A stretch of DNA of 64,000 nt, from positions 248,001 through 312,000 of the IMG/VR virus record IMGVR_UViG_3300024252_000004. One strand, 5' to 3'. A program made the position numbers and the translations under genes. Shown piece by piece: positions 35,325 to 48,554 of this stretch. Every line of letters starts with the position of its first letter. The first letter of the stretch is position 1. The notes under the pieces were generated by a model. It did no database searches and was not told the origin of the DNA. It worked only from the letters and a program-made list of their open reading frames with translations.

Positions 35325-35415
35325 AGGACTGTAGCTCAGTTTTTGGTTAGAGCGCTCGCCTGATAAGTGAGAGGCCACTTGGTATACGTTGGTTCAAATC
35401 CAACCAGTCCTACCA
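35325..35415 (+). tRNA. tRNA-Ile(GAU) with a 16-nt variable region
   Basis: Loop CT-GAT-AA; variable AGGCCACTTGGTATAC. Confidence 0.85.
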
Positions 35416-38564: not shown

Positions 38565-38582
38565 TGCTCCCATGAGGTGAGC

Positions 38583-39458
38583 ATGAAACCAGTAGTTCTT
38601 TTTGATATGGATGGCACATTAACTGAGCCAAGAAAAACAGTAGAAGCTCCGATGCTTCGGGCGTTAGAGACGCTGATGCAATACGCTGTAGTAGGCATTG
38701 TATCCGGCAGTGATTACGATTACATCTATCAACAGATGGAACTTGATAAAAATGATTTAAAAGATGTTTTGATTTATCCTTGCAATGGGACAAAGAGATA
38801 TGTCTATGATCAAGTTAAGAAACGTTGGGAAAATACGTTTTCTGTCGATATGAAAGAGGAGATCGGGGGCGAGAAGCTTTATAGTTTAATGGAGCTACTT
38901 TTAGATTGGCAGCTATTCTATCTTGAATCTGCAAAGAAAAATGGTTTCAAGACGCCCCTTACGGGTTTGCACTTACAGAACAGAGGCTCCATGATTAACT
39001 GGTGCCCAATTGGACGAGGCGCAGATCACGACGAAAGGAAATTGTTTCAGGACTATGATGCAAATACTTCTTGGCGAGAAGAGACCCTTCCCTTGTTGGA
39101 AGATGAAATCGGACTAAGAGTAGAAGGAGTAACAGTTGTCAAAGGCGGATCAACATCATTCGACATCTACCCAGACGGATGGGATAAAAGATTTGTCAAA
39201 AGATTCCACGAAGGACAAGAACTCTATTTCGTTGGAGATCGATGCGAAAAAGGTGGGAACGATTACGAGCTTTACGCCGATCTTAAAAGATCCAAAGAAA
39301 GTCGCACCTTTGAGCGCAAACAGCTATTCTTTCCCTGGTCTAAAGTCAATCAAGATGAGTGCAAATATCAAGATTCTTTTAACACCGGATCTCCGGAAGA
39401 AACAAGCAGGATCATTGAAGAGGATCTCATCCCGCGTATCGTTAAGGCGCGAGTTTGA
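38583..39458 (+). CDS. Phosphomannomutase-like HAD hydrolase (PMM2 type)
   Basis: FDMDGTLT, VSGSD, NRGSMINWCPIGR, GGSTSFDIYPDGWDK, FVGDRCEKGGNDYE. Confidence 0.88.
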   Translation: MKPVVLFDMDGTLTEPRKTVEAPMLRALETLMQYAVVGIVSGSDYDYIYQQMELDKNDLKDVLIYPCNGTKRYVYDQVKKRWENTFSVDMKEEIGGEKLYSLMELLLDWQLFYLESAKKNGFKTPLTGLHLQNRGSMINWCPIGRGADHDERKLFQDYDANTSWREETLPLLEDEIGLRVEGVTVVKGGSTSFDIYPDGWDKRFVKRFHEGQELYFVGDRCEKGGNDYELYADLKRSKESRTFERKQLFFPWSKVNQDECKYQDSFNTGSPEETSRIIEEDLIPRIVKARV

Positions 39459-40175: not shown

Positions 40176-40227
40176 AGTACTGTCACTCCTACTAAGATTA
40201 AGTATAATAGTAGGACTGGAGGTTCTA

Positions 40228-40915
40228 ATGAATTCGATCATATTGGAAATTAAAGCTGCCGAAGGCGGCACAGATGCAAAGCTCCTTGTTGATGAACAGT
40301 TGGCCATTTATAGGAGATACTGTTCTCGGAGGTCTCTTTGAGTTAGCTCTCTTAGATTCCAGAAGCGGTTTTATCAGATGCAGAGTCAGCGGCAAAAACG
40401 TCAAAAAACATTTTAGGCATGAGCCTGGAGGCCACAGATGGCAAAGGGTTCCTCCGACAGAGAGACGAGGAAGGGTTCATACTTCTACGATCACTGTCGC
40501 TGTCCTACCGGAAGTAACTGAATCTGAAGTTAAGATTAGCGAAAAAGATTTAGAATGGAAAGCCTTTAGGGGTTCTGGTCCCGGCGGTCAGCATAGAAAC
40601 AAAACTGATTCTGCTGTGTCGCTTCACCATAAGCCTACTGGAATCAAGATCCGTTCTGAATCTCAAAAGAGTCAGAAGCAGAATAAGGACACCGCTCTTG
40701 CAATATTGAGAGCGAGGTTGCATTCTGAGCAGAGAGAGTCTCAGTCTTTGCGACGCAGTAATATGAGGAAGAGCCAAGTGGGCTCAGGTATGCGCGCCGA
40801 CAAAATCAGGACGATCAGGTTGCAGGACGGACAAGTTACGGATCACAACACTGGAAAAAGAATCTCTGCGAAAAAATATTTGCGCGGAGACTTGGAAGGT
40901 CTATTTGAAAAGTAA
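40228..40915 (+). CDS. Class-1 peptide chain release factor (RF1-type PxT), programmed +1 frameshift at 40336-40341
   Basis: MNSIILEIKAAEGGTDA; GGAGG-TCT-CTT-TGA; +1 frame GGHRWQRVPPTE.RGRVHTS, GSGPGGQHRNKTDSAV, KIRT. Confidence 0.88.
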
Positions 40916-41105
40916 AGAAGCGATTGCAAAAGTGATGTTTTGGAGAATCGTAATTTCGATTCCGTTAAGCACGATAGTTACATATTTGTATTACGGTCAA
41001 CTCTTCAAGGCTATTGGGTTTGTCATCTTGATGAACGTAATGATGACGGCGGCACACTTCGCTTTTGAAAAGGTTTGGCCTAAGATTTGGAGGAAGCTTG
41101 AGTAG
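40905..41105 (+). CDS. Small membrane protein
   Basis: Two hydrophobic helices. Confidence 0.55.
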   Translation: MKSKEAIAKVMFWRIVISIPLSTIVTYLYYGQLFKAIGFVILMNVMMTAAHFAFEKVWPKIWRKLE

Positions 41106-41293: not shown

Positions 41294-41386
41294 TGCGGGG
41301 TCGACTAGTCTGGCCCATGTCACCAGTCTCATAAGCTGGCTCTGAGTATACCTCAATCGTTGGTTCAAATCCAACCCCCGCACCCA
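41294..41386 (+). tRNA. tRNA(CAU) with fMet-like acceptor, 19-nt variable arm and C73
   Basis: TGCGGGG/CCCCGCA acceptor, loop CT-CAT-AA, variable arm TGAG-TATAC-CTCA. Confidence 0.8.
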
Positions 41387-47134: not shown

Positions 47135-47221
47135 GCTACTGTGGCCGAGCGGTTGAAGGCAGCAGGCTGTTAACCTGCCTGGGAAACCACATCATAGGTT
47201 CAAATCCTATCGGTAGCGCCA
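47135..47221 (+). tRNA. tRNA-Asn(GUU) on a class II-like body
   Basis: Loop CT-GTT-AA; variable arm TGG-GAAA-CCA; G73. Confidence 0.85.
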
Positions 47222-48053: not shown

Positions 48054-48473
48054 TTGAAAAGAGTTTATGTTGATATGGACGGAGTCCTTTGTGATTACGT
48101 TGCAAAATTTACAGAACTCCGTAACGAAGGAAACAAGTTTCCTCAGCAAAGCTTTGACTTCTTCAGAAGTATGAAGCCTATGCCATCGGCTCTTGCAGCT
48201 ATGGGAATACTATCTAAACATTTCGATGTTTGGATTTTGACTAAGCCTTCCTACAAAAACCCTATGTCTTATACAGAAAAGAGACTTTGGGTTGAGGACC
48301 ATCTTGGTCTGGATTGGTGTAAGAAGCTGATCCTTTGTCCTGATAAGGGATTGGTTATAGGAGATTATCTTATTGATGATTTCTTGTGGCCTGAATTTCA
48401 AGGTGAACAAGTTCATTTTGGTTCAAATAGATTTCCAAATTGGAGATCGGTAATAGATTATATGCGCCCGTGA
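48054..48473 (+). CDS. 5'(3')-deoxyribonucleotidase (NT5C-like HAD)
   Basis: YVDMDGVLCD, WILTKP, EKRLWVEDHLG, GDYLIDD. Confidence 0.88.
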   Translation: MKRVYVDMDGVLCDYVAKFTELRNEGNKFPQQSFDFFRSMKPMPSALAAMGILSKHFDVWILTKPSYKNPMSYTEKRLWVEDHLGLDWCKKLILCPDKGLVIGDYLIDDFLWPEFQGEQVHFGSNRFPNWRSVIDYMRP

Positions 48474-48554
48474 GCCGAGTGGTTGATGGCCCCAGACTCT
48501 TAATCTGGTACAGGTAGTGCTGCAACGTAGGTTCGAATCCTACCGGGCGTACCA
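48464..48554 (+). tRNA. tRNA-Lys(CUU) on a class II-like body
   Basis: Loop CT-CTT-AA; 18-nt variable region; A73. Confidence 0.85.

Follow-up and report, generated by a model that had tools for sequence, protein, structure and literature searches.

A 395-kb marine phage encodes a shortened translation termination factor of RF1 type whose reading frame is split at a prfB-like CTT-TGA site, such that its synthesis is inferred to require a +1 slip of the ribosome. The same arrangement recurs in 63 non-redundant phage genes (counting this one) and in 56 genes from bacterial genome records, mostly Myxococcota, although we found no report of frameshift control for an RF1-type factor, with the proviso that absence from the searchable literature is not proof of absence. 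The stretch analyzed here (the window) comprises 64,000 nt, positions 248,001 to 312,000 of IMG/VR record IMGVR_UViG_3300024252_000004. A preliminary description, made from the sequence alone, had noted an internal GGAGG, a 3-nt spacer and CTT-TGA after codon 37, with a 228-aa product carrying PPT and GGQ; that observation is correct in every element, including the coordinates. Its interpretation is partly supported: the core reading of an RF1-type factor behind a prfB-type frameshift at UGA is supported by HMM, PDB, structure and comparative evidence, whereas the proposal that the factor exists to oppose the phage's amber suppressor is not supported.

A split RF1-type gene without domain 1

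The minus-strand gene upstream ends its coding region near 40178, after which a plus-strand gene begins with a Shine-Dalgarno (SD) sequence, GGAGG, at 40218-40222, 5 nt before ATG 40228. Since the same pentamer recurs as the internal element, GGAGG is presumably recognized by the translation system this phage uses. Frame 0 (40228-40341) runs for 37 codons (MNSIILEIKAAEGGTDAKLLVDEQLAIYRRYCSRRSL) and ends at TGA 40339-40341. The internal SD-like GGAGG lies at 40328-40332, followed by the spacer TCT (40333-40335), CTT (40336-40338; CTT_T at 40336-40339), TGA and a +4 base, G, at 40342. The +1 frame (40340-40915) is open for 191 codons to TAA 40913-40915, giving 37+191 = 228 aa, with PPT at 40451-40459 within QRVPPTERRGRVHTS, in the wider segment WQRVPPTERRGRVHTS, and GGQ at 40583-40591 within GSGPGGQH. 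GGQ was invariant in both alignments of the family. The 14-nt pattern GGAGGNNNCTTTGA occurs once in the window against 0.09 expected, and 9 of 100 shuffled sequences had at least one match; this is weak evidence on its own, and the weight comes from homology and conservation.

To identify the protein, we compared both pieces with profile and structure databases. In NCBIfam, piece 1 matched RF1 model positions 105-137 and piece 2 positions 157-335 of 347, with scores of 210.7 bits for RF1 (NF001859; cut-off 400), 137.5 for RF2, 73.7 for PrfH (TIGR03072; cut-off 166.65) and 42 for ArfB, all below the equivalog cut-offs; NCBIfam has no model for this family. Pfam found PCRF in both pieces (positions 100-133 for piece 1) and RF-1 in piece 2. 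The best match among PDB sequences was T. maritima RF1 at 162 bits, against about 92 for RF2 and 50 for PrfH, and the recognition loop aligned as QRVPPTERRGRVHTS against QRVPVTESGGRIHTS of T. maritima RF1. An AF2 model of P0004, a natural in-frame homologue (227 aa, 65% identical), had pLDDT 88.4 and pTM 0.73, with an N-terminal strand (residues 3-12) and helix (15-34) followed by further strands. It superposed on ribosome-bound RF1 at TM 0.90 over its whole length, better than on RF2 (0.81-0.87) or PrfH (0.65). The product is thus predicted to be RF1 domains 2-4 without domain 1: ORF0 encodes strand 1 and the helix whose tip carries EIKAAEGGTDA, in domain 2, ORF1 covers the rest of domain 2, the GGQ domain 3 and domain 4, and the shift site falls in the loop after the N-terminal helix. 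Compared with canonical RF1 (prfA), about 105 N-terminal residues are lacking and part of domain 2 is about 9 residues shorter. Domain 1 is dispensable for peptide release and codon specificity but is needed for the RF3 interaction (PMC1586002). PrfH, the RtcB-associated homologue, is also a class-I paralogue of about 200 aa without domain 1, but here the stop-codon reading elements are kept and the phage genome has no RtcB. Nor does the gene fit ArfB, which has a GGQ domain with a basic C-terminal tail and no codon-reading domain, since a PCRF domain and the recognition loop are present; a separate ArfB-like ORF exists elsewhere in the genome. Source annotations gave no name beyond "peptide chain release factor 1."

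Conservation and distribution of the cassette

A search of 5.8 billion proteins returned thousands of short relatives. Some are intact 222-229-aa proteins that begin M..IVEIRAAEGG (P0004, P0010, P0017, P0080, P0086, P0090, and P0092), but most are gene calls starting in the +1 frame, whose junk N-termini end in GGxF followed by D/E or S, which is what GGAGG-nnn-CTT-T followed by GA or AG reads as in the wrong frame. To examine this at the DNA level, we retrieved the best 80 of 441 IMG/VR relatives. About 70 of the 80 loci have EIRAAEGG in frame 0 and the GGQ part in +1, joined at CTT-T followed by a stop. Among the 63 non-redundant frameshifted phage genes, the shift codon is CTT in 62 and TTT in 1 (locus L043), although CTT makes up only 16% of Leu codons elsewhere in these genes; the site stop is TGA in 49, TAG in 12 and TAA in 2; and the +4 base is C in 48, G in 11, A in 4 and T in none. 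Arg codons at position -4 are CGG in 42 of 52 (16% elsewhere) and at position -3 AGG in 34 of 37 (11% elsewhere), a bias that creates the SD-like element. At prfB spacing, that element is a 5-mer in 37 genes, a 4-mer in 11 and absent from 15.

Frame conservation points the same way. In the 63 genes, the 33 frame-0 codons before the site show 58% mean pairwise identity and are never interrupted, while the same nucleotides read in +1 are 28% identical, with stops in 49 genes. After the site, the +1 frame is 45% identical and always open, whereas frame 0 is 19% identical, with stops in 50. Initiation in the +1 frame upstream of the site, which had been named beforehand as a result that would overturn the frameshift reading, is not available to most of the family: 47 of 63 genes have no ATG there and 23 have no start codon of any kind. 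The window itself does have a +1-frame ATG (40274-40276) with a weak GAAGG 8 nt upstream, and gene callers use it for a 213-aa call (P0001); it is probably not the real start, but some internal initiation cannot be excluded for this phage alone. Three independent seawater assemblies carry the identical sequence across the site with no indel. One metatranscriptome has only two 151-nt contigs, both downstream of the site (40649-40799 and 40844-40994), and these may be DNA carry-over.

The same gene with the same cassette occurs in GTDB representative genomes (at least 355 relatives), mostly of Myxococcota, including the complete chromosomes of Minicystis rosea and Archangium gephyra, Pyxidicoccus, four Nannocystis species, and many Kofleriaceae and Polyangia MAGs; others include Thiobacillus denitrificans DSM 12475 and Novimethylophilus. 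The 56 non-redundant frameshifted genes of this set have CTT in 56 of 56 and TGA in 39, TAG in 17 and TAA in 0. For the 119 genes together, the shift codon is therefore CTT in 118 and TTT in 1, the site stop TGA in 88, TAG in 29 and TAA in 2, the +4 base C in 94, G in 21, A in 4 and T in 0, and the SD-like element a 5-mer in 67, a 4-mer in 30 and absent from 22. The +4 base, mostly C and never T, indicates tuning for weak termination, although the window has G rather than the weakest-context C. The four Nannocystis species share flanks, with the gene upstream of clpS-clpA, and all keep the cassette; no conserved neighbors were found across genera, and most flanking ORFs have no Pfam match. About half of the phage loci lie in tRNA arrays, as do a few loci in bacterial assemblies with 19-25 tRNAs, echoing the RF-1 genes noted in mycobacterial tRNA arrays (PMC5966550). 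Among GenBank phages, the closest matches covering the start of the query are uncultured huge phages: LR745208.1, a published genome, carries the cassette without annotation (...RRGL* followed by the +1 continuation), and LR756511.1 is in frame. No cultured phage was found to carry the gene, the GenBank hits outside the uncultured huge phages (33-48% identical, the two annotated ones labeled prfA and prfB) being left out of this comparison.

On a tree of 69 phage sequences, TGA and TAG sites interchange repeatedly; well-supported branches force at least 4 switches, and parsimony gives about 10. In-frame genes are scattered, e.g., locus L033 is sister to the frameshifted L019. A second subtype (L138, L142, L163, and L164) carries CGG-GGG-CAC-CTT-TGA-C about 9-10 aligned residues further 3', after codon 46, and L159 has the cassette at a third place, so that it occupies three or more positions in the family. 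Several intact genes instead have an in-frame stop at a shift-site position, namely L039 (TAG) and its sister L044 (TGA), plus L148, L166, and L167 (TGA). A crude ORF test of recoding in genomes with an in-frame stop (G001 and G002) gave results mostly consistent with the standard code. The repeated solutions, with the cassette at different positions or an in-frame stop in its place, indicate that a stop codon early in the gene is itself the selected feature. Across the family, TAA occupies the site in 2 of 119 genes but is the gene's own terminator in 61 of 118, including 18 of 41 genes in loci with GC above 0.65, where only 8% of flanking ORFs end in TAA (Fisher p=7e-21). The TGA:TAG ratio at the site, 88:29, does not differ from that of flanking ORFs, 758:340 (p=0.2). 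Both p-values ignore shared ancestry. These results suggest selection for a stop codon read by only one canonical RF, in a weak context, and not for the codon cognate to the product.

Interpretation and alternatives

We consider it likely (probability roughly 0.7) that the gene encodes a class-I release factor of RF1 type that lacks domain 1 and is made only by obligatory programmed +1 frameshifting. In this view, ribosomes starting at ATG 40228 would translate 37 codons and pause with CUU in the P site and UGA in the A site while the internal GGAGG pairs with the 16S rRNA tail; peptidyl-tRNA-Leu would re-pair from CUU to UUU, and translation would continue in the +1 frame through PPT and GGQ. 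If a release factor read the UGA first, only a 37-residue peptide would be made, and the yield would therefore rise when termination at that codon is slow. Because the reading head is RF1-like while the site codon is UGA, the sensor most likely reports host RF2 capacity rather than the product's own level, and extra RF1-type activity could conceivably take over UAA and UAG termination (41 and 19% of this phage's stops), freeing RF2 for UGA. The analysis itself establishes the cassette, the two-frame architecture, its conservation and the RF1-type fold, whereas the occurrence of the slip, its dependence on RF2, the product's codon specificity and the physiological logic are inferences, no frameshift product having been detected directly.

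The signal matches the published prfB consensus, CTT_TGA_C with an upstream SD, of which GG_AGG is an accepted and UUU_U a rare variant (PMC3711429, PMC5009743); both systems have an SD-like element 3 nt upstream of CUU_U, an in-frame stop in a weak context (in the family, though not at the window's +4 base), a short ORF0 and the functional class-I release factor in the +1 frame, and the rare UUU_U variant is matched by L043. They differ in that the gene here scores as RF1 and not RF2, the site lies in domain 2 (codon 38, about RF1 model position 138) and not at about codon 26 of domain 1, which this protein lacks, so that the sites are not homologous, and TAG is used at 24% of sites against 0 of 8,164 in prfB (PMC12421855). 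The site codon is usually not cognate to the product's apparent specificity; the mismatch between a UGA site and an RF1-type head had been pointed out in the preliminary description, and UGA occupies the site in 88 of 119 members. prfA has no programmed frameshift (PMC12421855, PMC1586002): Prince et al. (2025) state that such frameshifting is unlikely to regulate RF1 (PMC12421855), a reviewer quoted in PMC1586002 notes that the RF1 family lacks the mechanism, and Atkins et al. (2016) call an RF gene gated by an in-frame stop "unknown" (PMC5009743). Phage-borne RF1 or RF2 genes among tRNAs and other translation genes have been reported in huge and recoded phages (Al-Shayeb 2020, PMC7162821; Borges 2021 preprint, 10.1101/2021.08.26.457843), but without mention of a frameshift or the missing domain, and the present phage is not recoded. 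A giant-virus eRF1 gene expressed through readthrough and frameshifting (cited in PMC5009743) is likewise a viral release-factor gene whose expression needs recoding, but it encodes an unrelated, eukaryotic-type protein in an amoeba virus, with a different signal.

Programmed +1 frameshifting in prfB is the textbook case of translational autoregulation. On the present reading, the family shows the same signal evolving convergently in RF1-type genes, at non-homologous positions and with either UGA or UAG, which separates the stop codon's role as a sensor from its cognate relation to the product and provides a natural experiment on what the cassette senses. It would also add a regulated termination factor to the translation toolkit of huge phages, and it exposes systematic mis-annotation, since gene callers report N-terminally wrong proteins of 180-215 aa. 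A broader possibility, about as likely as not, is that the window holds one member of a large, undescribed class of RF1 paralogues without domain 1, found in huge phages, tRNA-array regions of bacterial assemblies and Myxococcota genome records, whose synthesis is gated by stop-codon-dependent recoding. The cassette would have arisen or moved at least three times and been replaced in several lineages by an in-frame UAG or UGA (readthrough gating), the whole forming a general sensor of termination stress that supplies an RF3-independent back-up release factor, i.e., the RF1-side counterpart of prfB control that the literature states does not exist.

The main alternative, which we regard as unlikely but not excluded, is true prfB-like autoregulation by a factor of broadened or altered specificity that reads UGA, perhaps all three stops, and represses its own frameshift at TGA or TAG sites; broadened specificity had also been raised in the preliminary description. 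If the product read only UAA and UAG, the UGA form (74% of the family) and the UAG form (24%) would be regulated differently, yet they interchange freely and in the background ratio, which fits a generic weak-stop sensor but also a factor with broadened specificity. Moreover, the normally invariant tripeptide loop varies in this family (PPT, PPN, SPT, SPL, PET, PQN, PPH, PPG, PPS, and even loop deletions), and the His of GRxHTS is Gln in about half of the members; the rule of Ito et al. (2000) reportedly predicts that SPT is omnipotent. However, the window protein has RF1-type residues at the tripeptide and around it (WQRVPPTERRGRVHTS), SPT variants sit with TAG and not TGA sites, and beyond the trivial junction residue no residue co-varies cleanly with the site stop, the best columns reaching only p of about 5e-4 to 7e-4, uncorrected and phylogenetically clustered. 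Less likely still, the cassette might be only an expression limiter, holding a potentially harmful factor, not recycled by RF3, at a fixed low ratio without physiological sensing. RF overexpression does reduce fitness (PMC12421855), TGA and TAG are interchangeable, and the cassettes lacking an SD-like element and the in-frame versions suggest that strength is tunable. Nevertheless, a weak promoter or RBS would achieve the same result, the recurrence of the cassette at three or more positions, with in-frame stops occupying the same sites, points to the stop codon itself as the selected feature, and any stop-dependent shift is intrinsically sensitive to RF activity.

The proposal that slow UGA termination induces a UAG-reading factor to counteract the phage's own suppressor is doubtful. 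The phage does have one tRNA(CUA) at 54460-54537 (plus strand) and uses TAG to terminate about 17% of long ORFs, making competition at UAG conceivable, and L043 has a tRNA(CUA) 1 kb from its gene. However, a tRNA(CUA) lies within 2.5 kb in only 2 of about 150 loci, 60 of 71 loci in bacterial genome records have no tRNA nearby, there is no sign of TAG readthrough in this genome, where TAG is an ordinary terminator, and nothing links UGA sensing to suppressor activity. Least likely, a pseudogene, a 1-nt assembly error or a functional protein starting at ATG 40274 without the first 37 residues is contradicted by the identical assemblies, the junction shared by 119 non-redundant genes, the conserved and uninterrupted frame-0 piece, which forms a strand and helix integral to the predicted fold, and the lack of +1 starts in most relatives.

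Genomic context

The genome is a CheckV-complete record of 43.8% GC from seawater. An alternative genetic code was rejected, since ORF coverage is 92% under code 11, stop use is TAA 160, TGA 158 and TAG 76, and extensions after TAG are not longer than after other stops. The phage encodes 44 tRNAs, a tmRNA and the ArfB-like ORF, but no RF2 and no tRNA(UCA) were found in the genome. Its tRNA-Leu(GAG) (59751-59835, plus strand) and tRNA-Leu(AAG) (60214-60300) read the CUU shift codon, although any role in the slip is inferred from the prfB mechanism. A second candidate site, at genome position 182181 (GGGAG..CTT TGA C), lies inside a long ORF in the other frame and is a chance match.

In-frame stops and displaced cassettes among relatives

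Among the relatives' loci, intact mini-RF1 genes with an in-frame stop at a shift-site position instead of a frameshift were present in L039 (2387-3070), L044 (2387-3070), L148, L166, and L167. At the main site (codon 38), L039 has TAT TAG ATG while its sister L044 has CTA TGA CTG. L167 (Gemmobacter caeni) has a TGA near the main site, L148 has a TGA at the site used by a second subtype of the cassette, and L166 also has an in-frame TGA. These may be readthrough-gated release-factor genes, a design described as unknown (PMC5009743), although reinitiation is an alternative in L039, where an ATG directly follows the TAG. Four other relatives, L149, L151, L156, and L101 (LR745206.1), have in-frame stops at more than one place in the mini-RF gene (TGA where the nucleotides were checked, i.e., in L149, L151, and L156) and probably come from TGA-recoded phages; L156 lies next to a tmRNA and a tRNA(CUA).

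The second subtype, found in L138, L142, L163, and L164, carries CGG GGG CAC CTT TGA C after codon 46, about 9-10 aligned residues 3' of the main site, and in L159 the cassette occupies a third position, after codon 51. Therefore, the prfB-like cassette arose or moved several times within one gene family. A further resemblance outside the window, GGGAGAGATAT-CTT-TGA-C at genome positions 182166-182184 of the phage, was a chance match, since it lies inside a long ORF in another frame (adenylosuccinate-synthetase-like).

Distribution, terminators, and recognition loop of the mini-RF genes

Among the GTDB genome loci (L102-L172), the frameshifted mini-RF1 is common in Myxococcota genome records, e.g., those of Minicystis rosea (L102), Archangium gephyra (L103), and Nannocystis exedens (L150), as copies that might be either resident genes or old mobile elements. 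Most of these copies are not beside tRNAs, and in four Nannocystis species the gene lies upstream of clpS-clpA. Family-wide, the mini-RF genes end in TAA far more often than their neighbors do: 61 of 118 use it overall, as do 18 of 41 in loci above 65% GC, where 8% of flanking ORFs use TAA. This is the opposite of the near-absence of TAA at the shift site. We also found that the stop-codon tripeptide loop is not conserved in this family, as seen in L045, L052, and L099 (LR745208.1), and in L027, L031, L037, L041, L042, L050, and L068. Variants include SPT, SPL, PQN, PPH, and PPG, and three members have a loop deletion (WQE----KSGGR, VQRTS-NGR), suggesting diversified or lost codon specificity in some members.

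Other translation-related genes and flanking ORFs of the phage

Outside the window, the phage also encodes an ArfB-like, 113-aa protein (a GGQ domain with a basic tail; genome 149048-149389, L002:1468-1809) and a tmRNA with tag DDYSFVYANAGRGFGAPVVAYA (genome 325213-325615), which together with the mini RF1 gives it three termination or rescue functions, as inferred from sequence. Within the window, a tRNA with anticodon CUA (54460-54537) folds as a cloverleaf with an encoded CCA end; nevertheless, the genome uses TAG as an ordinary terminator, and there is no sign of readthrough. The calls for tRNA-Ile (35325-35415), tRNA-Met (41294-41386), tRNA-Asn (47135-47221), and tRNA-Lys (48464-48554) are 87-93 nt long, which is unusually long for these types and may reflect introns or extra arms. 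Just upstream of the RF gene lies a phosphomannomutase-like HAD protein (38577-39458; PF03332, a match at the 1e-29 level), while the ORFs immediately flanking the RF gene have no family match and the 66-aa ORF at 40905-41105 weakly resembles DUF2061.
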